The notes below the pieces were generated by a model. The model was not told where the DNA came from, made no database searches, and saw nothing but the letters and a program-made list of their open reading frames with translations. The position numbers were made by a program, and so were the translations under genes. This document shows, piece after piece, positions 6,653 through 63,669 of a DNA stretch of 64,000 bases. Each line of letters opens with the position of its first letter. The first letter of the stretch is position 1. The stretch spans positions 1,860,001 to 1,924,000 of the forward strand of contig NW_025767302.1 in assembly GCF_003918875.1 (NCBI RefSeq), given 5' to 3'. This DNA is from Haliotis rubra. Its lineage: Eukaryota.

Positions 6653-6816
6653 NNNNNNNNNNNNNNNNNNNNNNNNNNNNNNNNNNNNNNNNNNNNNNNN
6701 NNNNNNNNNNNNNNNNNNNNNNNNNNNNNNNNNNNNNNNNNNNNNNNNNNNNNNNNNNNNNNNNNNNNNNNNNNNNNNNNNNNNNNNNNNNNNNNNNNNN
6801 NNNNNNNNNNNNNNNN
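6653..6816. other. Assembly gap (164 N)
   Basis: Run of N followed by a 67-bp tandem unit (6817-6920), suggesting a collapsed repeat. Confidence 0.99.
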
Positions 6817-9984: not shown

Positions 9985-10390
9985 GAGCCGAGGATCTTAC
10001 CACAATAATAACCAATAACTGTGGACTCAAAATAACGAATAACTGGCTGTGGGCGCAGGATCTGACCAACATAATAACCGTTAACCCTGGACCTGACCAC
10101 CACAATAACCAATAACCGTTAACCCTGGACCTGACCACCACAATAACCAATAACCGTTAACCCTGGACCTGACCACCACAATAACCAATAACCGTTAACC
10201 CTGGATCTGACCACCACAATAACCAATAACCGTTAACCCTTGACCTGACCGCCACAATACCCAATAACCGTTAACCCTGGATCTGACCACCACAATAACC
10301 AATAACCGTTAACCCTGGACCTGACCACCACAATAACCAATAACCGTTAACCCTGGATCTGACCACCACAATAACCAATAAAAACCGTTG
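9985..10390. repeat. 38-bp minisatellite (~10 copies)
   Basis: Unit ccgttaaccctggacctgaccaccacaataaccaataa. Confidence 0.95.
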
Positions 10391-17809: not shown

Positions 17810-18962
17810 TCTGAGATCGTGGGACGCTCAGATAATGCTTTAGCAGAGAGCTAGGGTACGTCGTTTAGACAATGCTTTGCTTGCAGCTGAGAGGGTAGAT
17901 CGTTCAGACAATGCTTTGCATGCTACAGGGAGGGTAGGTCGTTTAGACAATGCTTTGCATGCAGCTGAGAGAGTAGGTCGTTCAGACAATGCTTTGTATG
18001 CAGCAGAAAGAGTAGGTTGTTAAGACAATGCTTTGTGTGCAGCTGAGAGGGTAGGTCGTTAAGACAATGCTTTGTATGCAGCTGAGAGGGTAGGTCGTTC
18101 AGACAATGCTTTGTATGCAGCAGGGAGGATAGGTCGTTAAGACAATGCTTTGTATGCAGCTGAGAGGGTAGGTCGTTAAGACAATGCTTTGCATGCAGCA
18201 GGGAGGATAGGTCGTTCAGACAATGCTTTGTGTGCAGCTGAGAGGGTAGGTCGTTAAGACAATGCTTTGTATGCAGCTGAGAGGGTAGGTCGTTCAGACA
18301 ATGCTTTGTATGCAGCAGGGAGGATAGGTCGTTCAGACAATGCTTTGTATGCAGCTGAGAGGGTAGGTCGTTAAGACAATGCTTTGCATGCAGCAGGGAG
18401 GATAGGTCGTTCAGACAATGCTTTGTATGCAGCAGGGAGGGTTAGGTCGGACAATGTGCAGCTGAGAGGGTAGGTCGTTCAGACAATGCTTTGCATGCAG
18501 CTGAGAGGGTAGGTCGTTCAGACAATGGCTTTGTATGCAGCAGGGAGGATAGGTCGTTAAGACAATGCTTTGTATGCAGCTGAGAGGGTAGGTCGTTCAG
18601 ACAATGCTTTGTATGCAGCAGGGAGGGTAGGTCGTTCAGACAATGCTTTGTATGCAGCAGGGAGGGTAGGTCGTTCAGACAATGCTTTGTATGCAGCAGG
18701 GAGGGTAGGTCGTTCAGACAATGCTTTGTATGCAGCTGAGAGGGTAGGTCGTTCAGACGATGCTTTGTATGCAGCAGGGAGGGTAGGTCGTTCAGACAAT
18801 GCTTTGTATGCAGCAGGGGGGATAGGTCGTTCTGACAATGCTTTATGTGCATCTGAGAGGGTAGGTCGTTCAGACAATGCTTTGTATGCAGCTGAGAGGG
18901 TAGGTCGTTCAGACGATGCTTTGTATGCAGCAGGGAGGGTAGGTCGTTCAGACAATGCTTTA
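17810..18962. repeat. 39-bp minisatellite (~29 copies)
   Basis: Unit gagagggtaggtcgttcagacaatgctttgtatgcagct, with a gggagg/gcagca variant; degenerate at the left edge. Confidence 0.95.
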
Positions 18963-26200: not shown

Positions 26201-29200
26201 GGGTACCTCGTAGAGATGGGAAAGCCGCAATAACTCGGTGCGCCTAGTGGCTGCAAGAGTTGTATGATCCCCAAGGAGTTGAGATTGATAATAAGATGTG
26301 CTGTTGAGATTGACATCCAATGATCGAGGGAAAAACTACCAGCGCCTTGAGCATGTACTAGTGCGTGGATATGTGCTATATAAATATCCAATAATATCCA
26401 ATAATAATAATCACAAATTTTGGGTGTTTTATCACATTCTGATGTATTCTAGAAAATGATTTACCGTATGTGAAAGAATATCTCTTTCCATCTTCAATAT
26501 TCAAATCTGTATGTTTCAACCTGTTTCTGTGGAAAATATGTGGGAATATGTTTCTATTACAATTGTTCTAGACAAAACACTTAAAACTTGGAGATTGGTA
26601 GGTATAAATGGCTGTTGAGTGTGACAAATTTTGGCTGGGTGACCACTGTCAATGACTTTCATCAGCCTGTAATGGATGCTCATGCTGTTGACCATTGGTA
26701 TCTGTTGCCCGGGTGATATTACAGGCTCCAGTCATAGTAATGTTCAAGGTTCAAGATTGTTGTGTTAAAGTGCCAATGGCAGGGTTTGTATCATAATGGC
26801 ACCCTAACAATATGTCACTGGTGAGTGCACACTTGCAGAAATCATATCTCTTAAACAAAATTACTCTGAAAGGATGTTTAGCATATGAAGCCGGTAATGA
26901 CTGTATTTTGTACAAATACACTGGGCAGACATTTAGGAAGTGAATATGTGAGTGAGTGAATTGTTTGGATTATTGCAAAGAAAGTGCATGCCTGAATTTG
27001 TAACAGCACAGTGTCACGTGTTGTTATACCAGGAATATAAGTGATCAAGTAAAAAAATCCAGTAGAATATTGGCACCAATTAGTCATATTATTACTTGCA
27101 TTCACTCTGATGCAAACACTACCAACAACTCCATGATACAGTTATAATAACTCTCTCAACTGATGGTGGGGCGGTGGGGTAGCCTAGTGGTTAAAGCGTT
27201 TGCTCGTCACGCCGAATACACGGGTTCGATTCCCCACATGGGTACAATGTGTGAACCCTATTTCTGGAGTCCCCTGCTGTGATATTGCTAGAATATTCCT
27301 AAAAGCGGCACAATACTAAACTCATTCACTCAACTGTTAGTTGTATGTTGTAATGTTTCTCTTTGTGTTAAGGCCAGCAGACGGTATCCACCTGTCTGGA
27401 CAGTGTGTCTGAGCTCATGCAGAAGACATTCGATGCTGGAGACCTGCAGTGGCTCCCCCCTGGTGTTCGGGGACCAGGACGATGCATGGGTGGAGGTTCT
27501 GCTGTGTTTGTTGGACATCTATGTGAATACATTGAGGTAGGGCTGGACATATGCTTTTAGCCATATACATTGTATCCCACATATTACACCTTTTTTGTGT
27601 CATGATAAATACGGGTGGTGGCGTAGCCTAGTGGTTAAAGTGTACATTTGTCACGCCAAAGGCCCGAGTTCTATTCCCCACATGGGTACAAAGCGTGAAA
27701 CCCATTTCTGGTGTCCCCTGCCATGATATTGCTGGAATATTGCTGAAAGCAACATAAAACCATAGTCACTCACTATGATAAAGTGAGTGAGTAAGTTTAG
27801 TTTTACGCCGCTTGACGAGCGAATGCGTTAACCACTAGGCTACCCCACCACCCCACTATGATAAATACCCTGGATCCACTTGCCACCATACCTTCGTATT
27901 GAGCATCATCCATAGGATATATTTTACCTGCTCAGACCCTGATATTTAGCTCCAAGTCTACACCAAATTACTGTTAGATTTCCTTCTTTTGCTTCATGTT
28001 TCAAAAATGAATTTAAAAAAGCAATTTCATTACAACATGATGACATATCATGATGAGAACCATGATGAGGATGAGCATTCTTCCTTCTTCCAGATTGAGC
28101 CCAGACTTGACTCTGTCACACAAAGTCAACCCTCATCCCATCTTCTTGGAGTTCATGGATTCCAATGATCACATGGTCCTGGTTGACCTCTTGACCTCCC
28201 CTGAGACATGTTTCCTGCTCTACTTCCTGCGGTACCTCAAGTGTCTTGTGTGTGAGTGGGACAAGTTTGTTACAGCATGTCATCTTAGATTTTGTGTGTC
28301 CCAGAATGAACCCATGGATCTTGAACTGAGTGGACAGACTGCTTCCAGAGTGTCAGACCACCCAGAACAAGAAGTGTGCGACAATGTACCAGTTGAACAT
28401 TCACAGCTTATAGAGGATAGATGCAAATGTTTACAGAAGTCAGTAAAGACAGACCACCCAGATGGTAGGGATGGTGAATGTAGGAGCTCAGATAGCAGCC
28501 AGATATCTTCAGGAGCAATGACATCCCCTCACACACAGCCATTTCCAACACAATCATCTACTCCACAACCATTTCCTACACAATCATCTAATCTACAGCC
28601 ATTTCCAACGCAATCATCTAATCTACAGCCATTTCCTAGACAATCATCTACCCCACAACCATTTCCTACACCATCATCTACTCCACAACCATTTCCTACA
28701 CAATCATCCACTGCGCAACCATTTCCTACACAATCAACCACTCCACAACCATTTCCTATACAATCATCCACTGCACAACCTTCTCAAACACAATCAACTA
28801 CTCCACAACAATCATCAAATCCACTATCATCTACTTCACAACCATTTGCTACACAATCTAATCCTCAACCAGTTCCTACACAATCATCTAGTCCAAAACC
28901 TTCTCAAACACAATCATCCACTGCACAACAATCACAGGCTAGAGGACACTGTAGTGGGTTGTCTTATTTGGCAGCATACTGTGATGATGATGATGATGAT
29001 GGTGGCAGTGATGGAGACATACGTTCTTCTGCCACAACACTGACAGATGGGGTTGTGCTGACCCCTGGAACAGTGCCGTCTACTGTCCAACTCAGTGCAA
29101 GGTCATGTGACCTACAGTGTGTGGAGAGTGTGATGAGTGAACTTATCCGAGTTGGTCTAAGAATTGAGAGACTGTCCAGTCAAGACCTGTTCCCCTACAA

Positions 29201-36600: not shown

Positions 36601-38627
36601 GTATGACAAGTGAATGCTTTAACAACAATTCTACCCCCCGCCCCCAACACTAGGTATTACCATCAGGAGTCTTAGATGCAACCCAGGAGGCAAGATAACT
36701 GACATCTCAAGGCCTTATTACTGCCATAGTCCATCTTGTAAAGTGTGTATTGGAACATCCAATGATAGATAACTGACTGTGCACCTGAAGGCCCAACTGC
36801 ACTCTCTACTTTGTTAGGTGACATGAATGGCGAGAAGTCACACTCACCAATATCAATACCCTCTCCACCAGTGAGCTTCTCTCTGATCTGCTGCTCCAAT
36901 AGTTTCAGCTGGTTCGTCGTCTTGCCCTTGAAGATGTTGCTGACTTCGCTGGTCACTGCCGTGTTGATGCCCTCGCGACGGTCACCAAAATATTCTGAAT
37001 ATGTCACATAAGAAAGTTATACCAACTAGACTGACTGACTGAGTTTGGTTTTACGCCGCTTTTAGCAATATTCCAGCAACATCACGGCTGGGGACACCAG
37101 AAATGGGCTTCACACATTGTACCCATGTGGGGATTCGAACCCGGGTCTTTGGCGTGACAAGTCAACGCTTTAACCACTAGGCTACCCCACCGCCCCTATA
37201 CCAACTAGACTATAATGCAGTTACAATGCTGCTGGGTATAACCAGCATTCTCTTCACACTGCAGCCAGTGTCCAAGTCCAAGACAGTTACCCAAGACATG
37301 ATTTCTTTGGTTGGTTTGTTGTTCAACGCCACACTCACTGACTCAGCAGTATTCCAGCTATATGGCAACAGCCTGTAAATAATCAAGTCTGGACCAGACA
37401 ATCCAGTGATTAACATCATGAGCATTGTTCTATGAAATTGGGATACAATGTCATGTGTCAACCAGATAAAAGAGCCTGACTACCCGATCGCGTTAGTCGC
37501 CAAGCATGGGTTGTTAAAGACCAATTCTAACCATTATCTTCATGGTTCACAATACATGAACGACTGTAAGATATTTAATCAAAATAGTTTTACCTGTTCA
37601 TTTACTATCAAATTAGAGCATCTACTGAAAACATGGTAAAGCTATGCTCCACCCATGCATCTGTTATAAAAAAACAGTGAAACCTGCACCTGCACCTGTC
37701 TAATCCGGCACACTGTCAAAACTGAAATTAAATTTTGGTCCCGCCATTTTACAACCATATTATGATCATTAAAACATTGTCTAATCTGGCACCTGTCTAG
37801 TCCGTATTCTGGCACGACTTTCTGGTCCCAACAAGCAATTTTAACTGTAATTAACACTGTCCAAACCGGCATGGGTATGAGCAGTCCAATCAAGGACCCA
37901 TAATCCAATACACTAATTAATCCTCTTGGCACACTAGATAATCAGGAAGTATTGATTGCACGGTGAATCAAACACTCGTAGGATTACCGTGGTTATGCTT
38001 TATAAACACTGGGGAATTGCATTAACTGTTTTCAAGTGAGTGACATGTGTCATAGATTAAACAAATAGGCATTCGTTCTGTCATCAACATTGTTTTAATT
38101 TGTTCCACAAATACAAAAGATCAAAGGCATTACAGAGATAAAGAGATTGACGAGTGTAAATGGCAGCCATGTTAGAAAATGATCGTCATTGTCTAATCTG
38201 TCACCCTGTCTAAACCGGCATTTTATTTCAGTCCGTGGGGTGACGGTTCAGACAGGTTTCACTGTACCTTATATCTAAGCATCTCCCAGCATACCATTAC
38301 AAGAGCATAGATCAGCTACAAAACTCACCAAGACAACATACTGTTTATGTCATTATGGCATTTTATGAAAACATCGTTGTGTATAATCACAAGAATAAAG
38401 GTTTAATATCTTCCATAAAACTGAAATACATATAATACTAATAACAATGAAACAGATCTTTGAGAAATCTAACCTCTTGTGCTAGCATCCAGCTTGCGGA
38501 GCTTGTTTAGCTCGTCTTCAGTCACAGTGACGATGTCTCTCCAGTAGTCTGTGTTCTTTCCCTGCTCCAGCTCCAAGTAGACCTTAATGTCCTCTAACAG
38601 ATCCTCCAGGTCTGTGATGGTCAGACC
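30623..38627 (-). CDS. CACTIN: Cactin (spliceosome C-complex factor), 3' part only (~459 aa); 5' exons not found in the window
   Basis: Exons in transcript order: 38474-38627 (GLTITDLEDLLEDIKVYLELEQGKN), 36848-36994, 36163-36272 (GYWESLLQQLKAHMARTRLRERHQ), 35115-35413, 34411-34601 (one extra base near 34460), 33749-33904 (WSDKYRPRKPRFFNRVHT), 32582-32665 (GFEWNKYNQTHYDIDNPPPKIVQGYKFN), 31989-32039 (IFYPDLIDK), 30945-31007 (FHAGPPYE) and 30623-30748 (DIAFKIVNREWEY...LWFHFKRYRYRR*). All introns are GT-AG; phases are consistent once the extra base is removed. Confidence 0.95.
32985..33130 (-). mobile_element. Short tRNA-like SINE family (other copies ~23920-24032 and an inverted pair at 48548-48740)
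   Basis: Shared GTGTGGGTTYGAATC...GGACTCAACC...TACTAGAATCTGTACTTTACT...GTGTAATCCC block found at three loci. Confidence 0.55.
35667..35990 (-). mobile_element. V-domain-like tRNA SINE in a Cactin intron
   Basis: Closely similar to 56778-57135. Confidence 0.75.
37675..38264. mobile_element. MITE, Tc1/mariner-pogo-like, in a Cactin intron
   Basis: CAGTGAAACCTG...CAGGTTTCACTG followed by TA, with internal repeated tctaatccggca motifs. Confidence 0.65.
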
Positions 38628-40545
38628 CTACAGTCACAGATATGGTACGAGTCAGACCCTACAGTCACAGATATGGTACGAGTCAGACCCTACATTCACA
38701 GATATGGTACGAGTCAGACACTACAGTCACAGATATGGTACGAGTCAGACCCTTCAGTCACAGATATGGTACTAGTCAGACCCTTCGGTCACAGATATGG
38801 TACGAGTCAGACCCTTCAGTCACATATATGGTACGAGTCAGACCCTACAGTCACAGAAATGGTACATGTCAGACCCTACAGTCACAGATATGGTACAAGT
38901 CAGACCCTACAGTCACAGATATGGTACATGTCAGACCCTACAGTCACAGATATGGTACGAGTCAGACCCTACAGTCACAGATATGGTACGAGTCAGACCC
39001 TACATTCACAGATATGGTACGAGTCAGACACTACAGTCACAGATATGGTACGAGTCAGATACTTCGGTTACATATATATGGTACGAGTCAGACCCTACAG
39101 TCACAGATAAGGTACGAGTCAGACCCTTTAGTCACAGATATGGTACAAGTCAGACCCTAGAGTCACAGATATGGTACGAGTCAGACACTTCGGTTTCAGA
39201 TATGGTACGAGTCAGACCCTTCAGTCACATATATGGTACGAGTCAGACCCTACAGTCACAGATATGGTACGAGTCAGACCCTACAGTCACAGATATGGTA
39301 CGAGTCAGACACGACAGTCACAGATATGGTACAAGTCAGACCCTTCGGTCACATATACATGGTACGAGTCAGACCCTTCAGTCACAGATATGGTACAAGT
39401 CAGACCCTTTGGTCACAGATATGGTACGAGTCAGACCCTTCAGTCACAGATTTGGTACAAGTCAGACCCTACAGTCACAGATATGGTACAAGTCAGACCC
39501 TTCAGTCACAGATATGGTACAAGTCAGACCCTTCAGTCACAGATATGGTACAAGTCAGACCCTACAGTCACAGATATGGTACAAGTCAGACCCTTCAGTC
39601 ACAGATATGGTACGAGTCAGACCCTTCAGTCACAGATATGGTACGAGTCAGACCCTACAGTCACAGATATGGTACGAGTGCAAGTCAGACCCTTCAGTCA
39701 CAGATATAGTGCAGAGTCAGAACCCGACAGTCACAGATATGGTACAAGTCAGACCCTTAGGTCACATATACATGGTCACAGATGTAATGAAATGCAGTCA
39801 GACCCTTCAGTCACAGATATGGTACAAGTCAGACCCTTTGGTCACAGATATGGTACGAGTCAGACCCTTCAGTCACAGATTTGGTACAAGTCAGACCCTA
39901 CAGTCACAGATATGGTACAAGTCAGACCCTTCAGTCACAGATATGGTACAAGTCAGACCCTTCAGTCACAGATATGGTACAAGTCAGACCCTACAGTCAC
40001 AGATATGGTACAAGTCAGACCCTTCAGTAACAGATATGGTACGAGTCAGACCCTTCAGTCACAGATATGGTACGAGTAAGACCCTACAGTCACAGATATG
40101 GTACGAGTAAGACCCTTCAGTCACAGATATGGTACAAGTCAGACCCTTCAGTCACAGATATGGTACTAGTCAGACCCTTCGGTCACAGATATGGTACAAG
40201 TCAGACCCTTCAGTAACAGATATGGTACAAGTCAGACCCTTCAGTCACAGATATGGTACGAGTCAGACCCTACAGTCACAGATATGGTACGAGTCAGACC
40301 CTACAGTCACAGATATGGTACAAGACAGAACCCACAGTCATAGATACATAACAAGTGCAACCCTACAGTCATAGATACATAACAGGTGCAACCCTACAGT
40401 CACAGATACATAACATGTGCAACCATAGTCACAGATACATAACATGTGCAACACTACAGTCACAGATACATAACATGTGCAACCCTACAGTCACAGATAC
40501 ATAACAACTGCAAACCCTAGTCACAGATACATAACATGTGCAACT
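38620..40545. repeat. 31-bp minisatellite (~55 copies) grading into a related ~30-bp unit at ~40320-40545
   Basis: Unit gtcagaccctacagtcacagatatggtacga; the later unit is acagtcacagatacataacatgtgcaaccct. Confidence 0.97.
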
Positions 40546-58455: not shown

Positions 58456-58461
58456 TTTATT
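58456..58461 (-). terminator. Candidate AATAAA polyadenylation signal of the GH86-like gene
   Basis: tttatt on the + strand, about 50 nt downstream of the TGA stop at 58513-58515. Confidence 0.5.
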
Positions 58462-58512: not shown

Positions 58513-61210
58513 TCATTGGCCTTTCCTCAGTGTTAGAGCAATTGCAGCGACCTGGCCTTGGTCCTGAGCAAAGCGCATCTGGACAGCATTGGCGTTTTGC
58601 TTGAGGATGGTCGGTGGAACATGATATTCTATCGTTGCCCAGAGATTGTCGGTGTCGTTGTTGCTCGGGTTGTGGAGAATGTAGTACGAGTGGAGATTTA
58701 CTCCATTCACAGTCACTGAAACTGGAATATACTTGGCAGAATGATCAGCGAAACTTACTGAAATGCGAAGTTTCGCTGCCGCAATGTGATGAAGATCACT
58801 GCTGTGGAGCATGATGTTCATGTGAGCTGCTTTCCTGTTTATTATAACCAACATGTCGTCTCCATAATGCACACTTTCGTAGACCAAGGGAACATGAGAA
58901 AATGTGTGACCTGTGGGGAACTGTAGGAAGCATGAGGATTCTGGAGGGACAGTCACCTGATTTCCATTGACATGAATAGGTACTTGCTTATCCAGTTGAG
59001 TGGCCCTCCTGTTATTGAGGTACAGACAGGTTGATGTCCCGTGGGTCAACTTTACCCATCCTTTGTCAAAAGCCAGTGTGACCTTAGCTTGAGCTGTGTC
59101 ATAGTTGTGTAGCAGAACGGTCAGCATTTTGGAACTTGGTTCCACAAGGACATGACTCTGTATCTGCCTCTCTGCCTGGTGGAACTGACTCTCGGATCTG
59201 AGGAACTTCATACTGCTGGTGATGTTGTCCCACAGGTGGAAGGCCAGAGCTATGTCTCTCTCGTTTTTATTCTTGTCCAGGATACTGTAGTTGATGCTTG
59301 CTTGGCCTTTCCTGTCGGTGTAACTGAGAAGGAAGGACACAGCCCTGTCCACCACATATCGAAGCTCAAGAAAGGTGAATATATTCGAGTTGTGAAGGTT
59401 GATGTAGGCCCAGTCCAAGAGGGTCGATGGTTTCTGGACATCGATGCCTGTGACCGTTGCTAGACCATGAGCTGAGAATATGATTGGAATATCCTTCCCA
59501 GTCATCATATGAGCATATGTTTCCACAATGTCCACCGTCCCAACCAGCCTAGCCTCATTTGGGCCATAAAAGTGATATCTGTTCCCCTGGACGACGAAGT
59601 GATTGAAAGGATGGAATGAAAAGAAGTCCAATAGGCCAAGGGACATGTTCATGAATTGTGTTATCCGGCTCCATTGACTAAAGTTCTGTTTATCCATATA
59701 GGTTATTCCAGCAGTAAGGGCAGGCCCGCCTATCTTTATTTGGGGATATATGGCTTTCACCTTCTTGGCCACAAGCTCGAATGCAGTAACGACAGTTGTC
59801 CAATTGACATCCAACTTCCACAGTGTGTTTGGCTCATTGATTGGTTCAAAATATGGAGGGACTGCGCCGTTAGAACCGTTGTATATTGCCTGGACGTGCA
59901 GAGATATGGTTTCCGCTACAGCATCAAGATTATTTGGAAAATGGCCCTTATGTGCAGATTTGTCCATCCAGTGAGGCCATAAAGTTCCTATATAAGAAAT
60001 ATGATGCATATGTAAAGAAATTCATTTGCTGAGATACTGATGAATCTTGATGAAAGTTATCCCGTGCATTTTTTTAATCTTCCTGAACACTAAACATCTG
60101 TAGGATCAGTGCTATAAAGTTTGCATTTTGACTGCCATCACATTGTAACATCTTTAGATTTTCAACAGAAATCCTCTTCTCTGTCAAAACTAATTATTTA
60201 ATGATCTCATGTCTGTTAAGGTGATTCGTGAACTTTACGACATGGACAGAATTGTAAAATCTTATATCGGTTGGAAAGGTTTTGTCTCTACTATTTGCAT
60301 CATATTGGCAAAAAGCAAAGCTGTGCCCCTTGGTAGTATATGAGTGGATCTCATGATTTACACTCAATTTTGGTAAACAGATAAATACCAGTGATTGATT
60401 GAGTGAGTGAGTCAGTGAGTATGCTTTTGCGCCACTTTTAGCAACATTCCAGCAATATCACAGTCGGGGACAGCAGAAATGGGCTTTACATATTGTACCG
60501 AATTGGGAAATCAAACCCAGGTCTTCAGCGTTATGAGTTGACGCTTTAACCACTAGGCTACCCCACCGCCCTGTTGAATACCAGTTGTGGAAGCCAAGTA
60601 CATCAAACCCATTGGTAAAAACAAGGAGACATGCGAGCTCTCTTCACCTACCGCTAAGTTCCAGCATAATTGGTCTCTGTTTTCCATATGTATTCAAATT
60701 GTAGATATATTTCTCAACTAAATTGTGTTGAAACTGCTTGTTTTGGAAGAATGCGGGATCCGGGTACCCCTTTCGGTTTGGATCCTCCGTCACCTATGAG
60801 AAACGTCAACTTTAACACAGTTTAAAGCCAAAACCTCTGGGAAACGATATCTATATAACAAAACATTAAATTCAGTGCTTGAGTAGGTTCATTGATAGAA
60901 ATATTCACGCTCAAGTTTTGCATTTAGAAAATATATATTTTCCAGGTGAAACACTCACTTCTAGGATATAGTCGAACACACATACCTTGTCAAAATAGTT
61001 TAAGTCTGAAGTTATCCATCTTCCAGTGCGGGCTCCGGTTTTCTTCACGTTGTCTAAAGTGTAGTGATTGTCCAGGCCCATTTTACCATTCCACCTGTCG
61101 GGGTCGAAGTTGGTTTTTCCTCCTTGTACGAGGTACTCTGGGTAAATGGTCACTGTATACCCCCTGACACAAGGAAAGGTACAGAGAGCGAGCACAATGG
61201 GTAGCAACAT
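58513..61210 (-). CDS. Secreted GH86 beta-porphyranase/agarase-like protein (clan GH-A barrel + beta-sandwich tail), 613 aa, 3 exons
   Basis: Exons 60986-61210 (signal peptide MLLPIVLALCTFPCVRG), 60652-60793 (VTEDPNRKGYPDP) and 58513-59987. Introns are GT-AG with phases 0 and 1; total 1842 nt. Motifs VPPYFEPINEP, KIGGPA, LDFFSFHPFN, VDIVETYAHMMTGKDIPIIFSAHG and the C-terminal AKLRISV...VTVNG...IEYHVP...NAVQMRFAQDQGQVAAIAL line up, from memory, with Bacteroides plebeius BpGH86A. Confidence 0.8.
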
Positions 61211-63365: not shown

Positions 63366-63669
63366 GTCAGTGTAATTAGTGTCCTGTGTGACACTGTGCC
63401 ACTCTGTCAGTATAATTAGTGTCCTGTGTGACACTGCCACTGTGTCAGTATAATTAGTGTCCTGTGAGACACTGCCACTGTGTCAGTATAATTAGTGTCC
63501 TGTGAGACACTACCACTGTGTCAGTATAATTAGTGTCCTGTGTGACACTACCACTGTGTCAGTATAATTAGTGTCCTGTGTGACACTGCCACTGTGTCAG
63601 TATAATTAGTGTCCTGTGTGACACTGCCACTGTGTCAGTATAATTAGTGTCCTGTGACACTGCCACTGT
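63366..63669. repeat. 38-bp minisatellite (~8 copies)
   Basis: Unit gtcagtataattagtgtcctgtgtgacactgccactgt. Confidence 0.95.

Follow-up and report, generated by a model that had tools for sequence, protein, structure and literature searches.

Loss of the catalytic nucleophile in a conserved abalone clade of GH86-like proteins, candidate galactan-binding pseudoenzymes

Family GH86 is known as a family of red-seaweed galactan hydrolases of marine and gut bacteria, its activity being the endo-hydrolysis of beta-1,4 linkages in agarose, porphyran or funoran, and its structurally described members, BuGH86 (PDB 5ta0/5ta1/5ta5), Aga86A_Wa (8h97) and BpGH86A (4aw7), are beta-agarases or beta-porphyranases. 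Glycosidase folds have also been put to other uses. The GH18 chi-lectins (for example YKL-40) are secreted duplicates of active paralogues that keep the TIM barrel and its cleft, have lost a catalytic residue and are kept by selection, and the invertebrate beta-1,3-glucan recognition proteins (GNBP, betaGRP or LGBP) carry a dead GH16 domain, recognise polysaccharide and have a demonstrated immune role. Engineered glycosynthases, in which the nucleophile Glu of a retaining glycosidase is replaced by Ala, Gly or Ser, are laboratory constructs that need activated fluoride donors, and we know of no natural donor for such an enzyme. Here we describe LOC124255411, a gene of the blacklip abalone Haliotis rubra lying in a 64,000-nucleotide stretch of contig NW_025767302.1 (assembly GCF_003918875.1, positions 1,860,001 to 1,924,000 of the forward strand; hereafter the window), whose product is a GH86 protein with Ala in place of the catalytic nucleophile. 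It is probably a secreted, non-hydrolytic, lectin-like pseudoenzyme that would bind red-algal galactan in a retained cleft.

The relationship to the bacterial enzymes is seen both in sequence and in structure. A phmmer search against PDB sequences gave E values of 6.2e-11 to 5ta1 (BuGH86) and 3.3e-10 to 8h97 (the agarase Aga86A_Wa), a profile of 55 mollusc proteins matched 5ta1, 8h97 and 4aw7 with E values of 1.6e-53, 1.3e-49 and 1.1e-39 (near full length for the first two), and Pfam reported BPA_C at 5.1e-09 together with a weak match to Porphyrn_cat_1. An AlphaFold2 model built on 30 homologues has a mean predicted local distance difference test score (pLDDT) of 89.7 and a predicted template modelling score (pTM) of 0.89; when it was compared with the PDB by Foldseek, the seven best matches were chains of the four GH86 entries, with full-length template modelling (TM) scores of 0.75-0.81 and E values of 1e-35 to 1e-40, and the next fold, GH30, reached a TM score of 0.45. 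The window protein is GH86 by sequence and by fold, the TM scores to all four solved family structures being 0.78-0.80, with an (alpha/beta)8 barrel followed by two immunoglobulin-like beta-sandwich domains, a three-domain fold that it has in common with the bacterial enzymes together with the NEP motif, the beta-6 F/W-H motif and a P-x-x-x-S-[E]-[YF]-G context in beta-7. It differs from them in being the product of an animal gene with introns, in its identity of only 16-19% (the range for the abalone proteins against characterised bacterial GH86 enzymes) and in two catalytic residues: the family's sequence similarity, architecture and NEP acid/base Glu are present, but the nucleophile Glu at the end of beta-7 is Ala295 and the Tyr of the beta-6 H-x-Y motif is F250. 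The positions concerned are as follows.

59833..59838, minus strand: N173-E174 (AAT GAG), with the acid/base Glu of the clan GH-A NEP motif still present and aligned to the same motif in 5ta1, 8h97 and 4aw7.
59605..59607, minus strand: F250 (TTC), the beta-6 site, which is Tyr in Glu-type family members and in the bacterial GH86 structures.
59470..59472, minus strand: A295 (GCT), the catalytic nucleophile position, corresponding to E322 of BuGH86, in the context D-I-P-I-I-F-S-A-H-G.

An earlier note on this stretch, made from the letters alone, had read the NEP motif as intact, with GAG at 59833-59835, and both the codon and the alignment with the three bacterial NEP motifs agree with it: E174 is encoded by GAG at 59835-59833, lies within N173-E174-P175 and is invariant in 55/55 aligned proteins. 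The note had likewise placed an Ala (GCT, 59470-59472) at the nucleophile site, and this too is borne out, since phmmer and profile alignments set A295 opposite BuGH86 E322, the one position at which 5ta0 (E322Q, ISQYS) departs from wild-type 5ta1 (ISEYS). The profile, which aligns the family S-E-[YF]-G with the corresponding motifs of all three bacterial enzymes, also sets A295 opposite the E of 8h97 (ISEYG) and the E of 4aw7 (PLAISEFG), the latter being the BpGH86A motif as the note had correctly given it. In BuGH86, E322 is the nucleophile; the E322Q protein is inactive and has been crystallised with an agaro-oligosaccharide across subsites -3 to +2 (PMC5849685). The window protein is in effect a natural counterpart of this inactive variant used for the substrate complex. 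In the predicted structure E174 follows strand 168-170, H248 and F250 stand at the end of strand 244-248, and A295 is in strand 291-302 after helix 267-285, just as beta-4, beta-6 and beta-7 should follow one another in a clan GH-A barrel. In that clan the beta-6 Tyr hydrogen-bonds and holds the nucleophile, and because these two residues pair, the substitution Y250F, on which the note had not remarked, means that both halves of the nucleophile dyad are gone.

Paralogues were collected by word-indexed protein searches with 30 proteins listed per search, and the counts given here are those among the matches listed. The mollusc GH86-like family so found takes in four Haliotis species, Mytilus, the chiton Liolophura and two environmental sequences. 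Its catalytically intact members (the Haliotis proteins named 'beta-porphyranase A-like', 'beta-agarase-like' and 'funoran endo-beta-hydrolase-like', and those of Mytilus and Liolophura) are about 600-640 amino acids long, show 34-47% identity, share the three-exon layout, as read in nine Haliotis paralogues and orthologues, and, like the window gene, lie in tandem or in clusters; the window protein is the only one in which a signal-like N-terminus was observed. A survey of paralogues for Glu versus Ala, one of the checks proposed in the note, divides the 55-protein alignment into 37 proteins with S/T-E-[FYH]-G and 18 with S-A-[HY]-G. The beta-6 motif F-H-x-Y follows the same division, with Tyr in 37/37 Glu-type proteins, as in bacterial 5ta1, 8h97 and 4aw7, and Phe in 18/18 Ala-type proteins. 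Nine further members of the Ala-type clusters read FHPF and S-A-[YF]-G, and the Ala clade comprises 27 proteins from four Haliotis species, every one with both E295A and Y250F; it is the sole clade to lack both residues, and wherever a member's sequence reaches the acid/base site, N-E is kept.

In a midpoint-rooted maximum-likelihood tree of 30 proteins the Ala proteins are monophyletic (ultrafast bootstrap 100; Shimodaira-Hasegawa-like approximate likelihood ratio test, SH-aLRT, 99), with a single change of state, and are nested among Glu-type Haliotis, chiton and mussel proteins. Their sister group is a Glu-type Haliotis clade; the Haliotis protein P0014 and then the chiton sequences branch outside, and the Mytilus proteins fall in the other half of the tree. 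Since the Ala clade is one branch that needs one state change and is nested in Glu-type proteins, a single E-to-A loss within the abalone lineage is indicated. The clade has two old subclades, A1, which includes the window gene, and A2, about 45% identical to A1, each with several Haliotis species, and the sequences place the loss of the nucleophile before the A1/A2 duplication and before the divergence of the sampled Haliotis species. With an Ala-clade profile as query, nine clusters at 90% identity were listed, every one from Haliotis, and after them the score fell from 929 to 754 bits, where the Glu-type sister clade begins; in the databases searched, and among the matches listed, the Ala clade appears to be restricted to Haliotis. 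The stem branches of the two subclades are 0.51 each, as against 0.15-0.28 in the sister clade, and the clade-wide diagnostic changes are few: D17, N44M, F149T/M, T212A, Y250F, E295A, F359L and T495V/I.

One distant match stands apart from the family, P0057 (a Logan contig, 636 amino acids), the sole one among the matches listed, with 26% identity and an E value of 3e-34 to the family profile; it has intact S-E-H-G and F-H-T-Y motifs, and His after the nucleophile thus occurs in a Glu-type protein also.

The Ala codon itself is secure. The note had judged a base-call error unlikely on the ground that GAR to GCT needs two substitutions, which is correct for the particular codon GCT; the Glu-to-Ala replacement, however, is made by a single substitution (GAR to GCR), and the change at the third base is synonymous. 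The eight Ala-clade genes for which DNA was read, from three species, have GCT (A1) or GCC (A2) at this site and TTC or TTT for the Phe, whereas the Glu-type sister genes have GAA or GAG at the nucleophile and TAC or TAT at beta-6. Independent DNA-run contigs, about 96% alike, which align to LOC124255411 and span its introns too, show no change at 59470-59472 or at 59833-59835. As these eight genes, all 27 Ala-clade proteins of the four species and the DNA contigs agree, the Ala codon is no sequencing slip.

A Glu or Asp elsewhere at the end of strand beta-7 would have spoken against loss of the nucleophile, and no gain of one was found there. Among acidic residues gained by the Ala clade, the sole gain common to both subclades is D288, which we rejected as a replacement nucleophile because it sits at the wrong, N-terminal (bottom) end of beta-7. 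D376, beside W375, was gained in subclade A1 only and was rejected as a clade-wide replacement. His296 was considered as an alternative catalytic residue and rejected, subclade A2 having Tyr or Phe there and the Glu-type P0057 reading SEHG. At the catalytic face no acidic residue, and no other polar residue, has been gained clade-wide in the Ala clade.

The ratio of nonsynonymous to synonymous substitution rates (dN/dS), also proposed as a check, was estimated by the NG86 method on exon 3 (about 490 codons) from 12 genes, with bootstrap 95% intervals. For the window gene it is 0.152 (0.109-0.223) against the H. asinina orthologue (P0032), 0.217 (0.133-0.353) against the tandem copy P0031 and 0.239 (0.180-0.337) against the H. 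rufescens relative (P0002); other Ala-clade pairs lie at 0.18-0.30, and two pairs from the catalytically intact sister clade give 0.155 (0.116-0.223) and 0.164 (0.115-0.232). Judged from these sequences, purifying selection acts on the Ala-clade genes (0.15-0.30 overall) about as strongly as on their catalytically intact paralogues. Residue retention points the same way. Of 106 positions at least 90% conserved among 30 outgroup proteins, the Ala clade keeps 78 (A1 89, A2 76) and the intact sister clade also 78, the loss of E295 and Y250 being limited to the Ala clade in this comparison; among the conserved positions that it keeps are N173-E174, R64, W65, H135, H248 and W375. The window protein accordingly has several of the features of a glycosidase-derived, lectin-like pseudoenzyme, namely a parent fold and cleft that are kept, a lost catalytic residue and purifying selection; for a further feature, glycan binding without turnover, the substrate-bound BuGH86 E322Q protein offers an indirect precedent.

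LOC124255411 has three exons on the minus strand, from 61210 to 58513, with GT-AG introns, and its elements are these.

60986..61210, minus strand: exon 1, carrying the start codon and encoding residues 1-17 (MLLPIVLALCTFPCVRG), a signal-like peptide, and then the mature protein's N-terminal strand; GT donor at its end.
60652..60793, minus strand: exon 2, residues ~76-123, with an AG acceptor and a GT donor.
58513..59987, minus strand: exon 3, residues 123-613 and the stop codon, encoding the greater part of the (alpha/beta)8 barrel and both C-terminal beta-sandwich domains.
58456..58461, minus strand: AATAAA, ~50 nt past the TGA stop, a motif of presumed use as polyadenylation signal.

The spliced product of 613 amino acids is 100% identical to NCBI XP_046545281.1, so that the frame is intact over its whole length, as the note had held for the remainder of the open reading frame, and the splice sites are canonical. 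The three-exon layout recurs in 11 paralogues and orthologues, from three species. Residues 2-13 have a mean Kyte-Doolittle hydropathy of 2.26, the model shows low pLDDT at residues 1-20 with a helix at 3-10, and the protein carries seven N-x-S/T (N-glycosylation) sequons; this hydrophobic, signal-like N-terminus and the sequons fit the note's view that the protein would be secreted. Within the window the gene is present as a single copy. A tandem duplicate, LOC124255410 (P0031, 613 amino acids), 93% identical and in the same orientation, lies about 4 kb upstream, just past the window end (L011:6001-10911, the start of the window gene being at L011:14926), and in it too the nucleophile is replaced by Ala and the beta-6 Tyr by Phe. 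Intron 2 contains, at 60380-60587, a very high-copy interspersed repeat, for which the summed depths of DNA-run contigs are 3e5 to 4e6 as against ~10-100 on its flanks, with many different contig junctions. Read on the minus strand the repeat begins GGCGGTGGGGTAGCCTAGTGGTTAAAGCG and looks tRNA-derived, resembling a short interspersed nuclear element; ARAGORN called no tRNA in it.

How the Ala clade arose, and what it may do, can be set out as follows. In a single ancestral Haliotis event the nucleophile Glu became Ala, and the beta-6 Tyr became Phe, the remaining conserved scaffold, including the acid/base Asn-Glu pair, being retained. Without the nucleophile, the protein cannot form the covalent glycosyl-enzyme intermediate on which retaining double displacement depends, and because the nucleophile Glu and the beta-6 Tyr are both missing, the classical retaining mechanism cannot operate. 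The retained cleft would bind a red-algal galactan chain, of agarose, porphyran or funoran type, and leave it uncut, and the pseudoenzyme would have arisen among the abalone's own catalytically intact GH86 paralogues, from an expanded set of genes next to which it now sits. Since the nucleophile is gone and the inactive BuGH86 E322Q still binds agaro-oligosaccharide, binding without cutting seems the most likely outcome. The note had proposed a catalytically dead, secreted protein binding agar or porphyran; the pseudoenzyme part of that proposal is well supported, on the loss of nucleophile and beta-6 Tyr, the age and clade-wide extent of the loss and the purifying selection. That the protein is secreted and binds a glycan is something that we infer, as we do its ligand, and the roles that the note suggested (the sensing of food or settlement cues, mucus, immunity) are putative. 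Its analogy with the GH18 chi-lectins is apt in that a dead glycosidase fold has been kept, and loose in that chi-lectins, which belong to another family and clan with a substrate-assisted mechanism, lose the acid/base Glu, whereas the Ala clade keeps that residue and loses the nucleophile. The beta-glucan recognition proteins are likewise glycosidase-derived with lost catalytic residues, but have the GH16 beta-jelly roll fold and a beta-glucan ligand.

Several points weigh against a purely binding protein or limit how closely it can be described. No Ala-clade member that covers the site has lost the acid/base Glu, and a pure binder would not obviously need it, which leaves room for residual or altered chemistry. 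The site of A295 was placed by sequence and profile alignment and by the order of secondary-structure elements, rather than by a residue-level three-dimensional superposition, and the ligand is guessed from known family activities, at 16-19% identity to the characterised enzymes. It is on the first of these points that one could argue for an enzyme with a non-canonical mechanism, in which water or a free anion such as phosphate, held in the cavity left by the Glu-to-Ala change, would attack the anomeric carbon with inversion, or a substrate group would act as nucleophile, while E174 still protonates the leaving group; activity of natural glycosynthase or transglycosylase type would be included. 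The preservation of N173-E174 across subclades only ~45% identical agrees with this, as does a constraint as tight as in the active paralogues, and a small, non-nucleophilic residue (A295) beside a retained acid/base (E174) is identical to the pattern of engineered glycosynthases and of anion-rescue experiments in established enzymology. The Ala clade, however, additionally lacks the Tyr that positions the nucleophile, which resembles a dismantling of that half-site more than its retuning, and the catalytic face has no new carboxylate or other clade-wide polar gain. Known GH86 substrates are without a 2-acetamido group for substrate assistance, activated glycosynthase donors are not known in nature, and a secreted phosphorylase would be unusual. 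We consider such an enzyme possible but unlikely. The fuller proposal, that the Ala clade is a naturally evolved nucleophile-less GH-A enzyme using its acid/base Glu with an exogenous anion or cavity water in the remodelling of red-algal galactans, whether by inverting hydrolysis, by a phosphorylase-like reaction or by natural glycosynthase or transglycosylase activity, we hold to be distinctly doubtful; if true, it would show in nature a design principle hitherto known from protein engineering alone.

A non-catalytic protein might also have a main partner other than an algal glycan: it could bind another protein, either to assist or regulate the active GH86 paralogues or to draw off microbial or algal inhibitors as a decoy, or it could recognise a different glycan in mucus or immunity. 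The long stems of both Ala subclades suggest a burst of change after the loss, there are clade-wide changes beyond the catalytic pair (D17, N44M, F149T/M, T212A, F359L and T495V/I), and the invertebrate GH16-derived glucan-recognition proteins offer an established example of dead glycosidases recruited to immunity. The conserved barrel-face residues are nevertheless kept as well as in the active sister clade, so that, most simply, the cleft is still in use, and we rate a partner of this other kind as rather improbable. That the gene is a decaying pseudogene, or its Ala codon an artefact of assembly or annotation, has very little probability indeed. Searches of sequencing runs listed no RNA run, and the gene model of one H. 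rubra relative (P0003, 514 amino acids) does look broken up over the C-terminal third, but the window gene has an intact 613-codon frame, canonical splice sites and a polyadenylation signal, dN/dS in the clade runs from 0.15 to 0.30 with no bootstrap upper bound above 0.35, both substitutions recur in 27 proteins from four species among the matches listed, and the independent DNA contigs agree at the Ala codon. This explanation was rejected on dN/dS and conservation, and the gene is selectively maintained, being neither pseudogene nor artefact. We therefore retain a non-hydrolytic, galactan-binding pseudoenzyme as the probable reading of LOC124255411.

The surroundings of the window gene and of its relatives include several further features. 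The relative P0003 (H. rubra LOC124290996, L002:3001-6557) is an Ala-clade paralogue; its final 79 residues agree with the genome at only ~70%, and do so across an extra 'intron' placed within an exon that is single in all relatives. It may be a disrupted or mis-modelled copy. GH86-like genes are clustered on chromosomes: at H. asinina CM074526.1, 19.95-20.99 Mb (L004, L005, L007 and L009), two Ala-type genes lie ~30 kb apart and Glu-type sister genes are found ~1 Mb farther along the same chromosome, with fragments of another GH86-like copy downstream at locus L005, and at H. rufescens JALGQA010000018.1, 23.88-23.92 Mb (L006 and L008), two Glu-type genes lie ~30 kb apart. Elsewhere in the window there are several minisatellites and a run of undetermined bases.

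6653-6816: 164 consecutive N, either an assembly gap or masked sequence.
10073-10381 and 63366-63669: minisatellites with 38-nt units of different consensus.
17853-18961: minisatellite with a 39-nt unit, 29 copies.
28534-28929: minisatellite array with a 30-nt unit.
38620-40544: minisatellite with a 31-nt unit, in an array of ~1.9 kb.

Glycosidase-derived pseudoenzymes are a well-known class, to which the chi-lectins and the GH16-derived glucan-recognition proteins belong, and an animal GH86 pseudoenzyme is new in the literature searched. Searches of the open literature for GH86 or porphyranase together with abalone, Haliotis, mollusc or metazoa gave bacterial papers only, with no animal-encoded or nucleophile-less GH86 among them, and the main text of a compendium of metazoan horizontal gene transfer does not mention mollusc GH86-like genes. 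The new elements here are the co-loss Y250F, the dN/dS of orthologues, the retention test and the taxonomic range.

In summary, the Ala clade provides a clean natural experiment in the passage from glycosidase to pseudoenzyme, with two coupled residues lost, the acid/base residue kept and the constraint unrelaxed. Since abalone graze on red algae and, as larvae, settle on coralline ones, this abalone-specific, duplicated and conserved clade, whose members probably grip algal galactans without cutting them, is a concrete candidate for a part in the sensing, sorting or processing of algal food.

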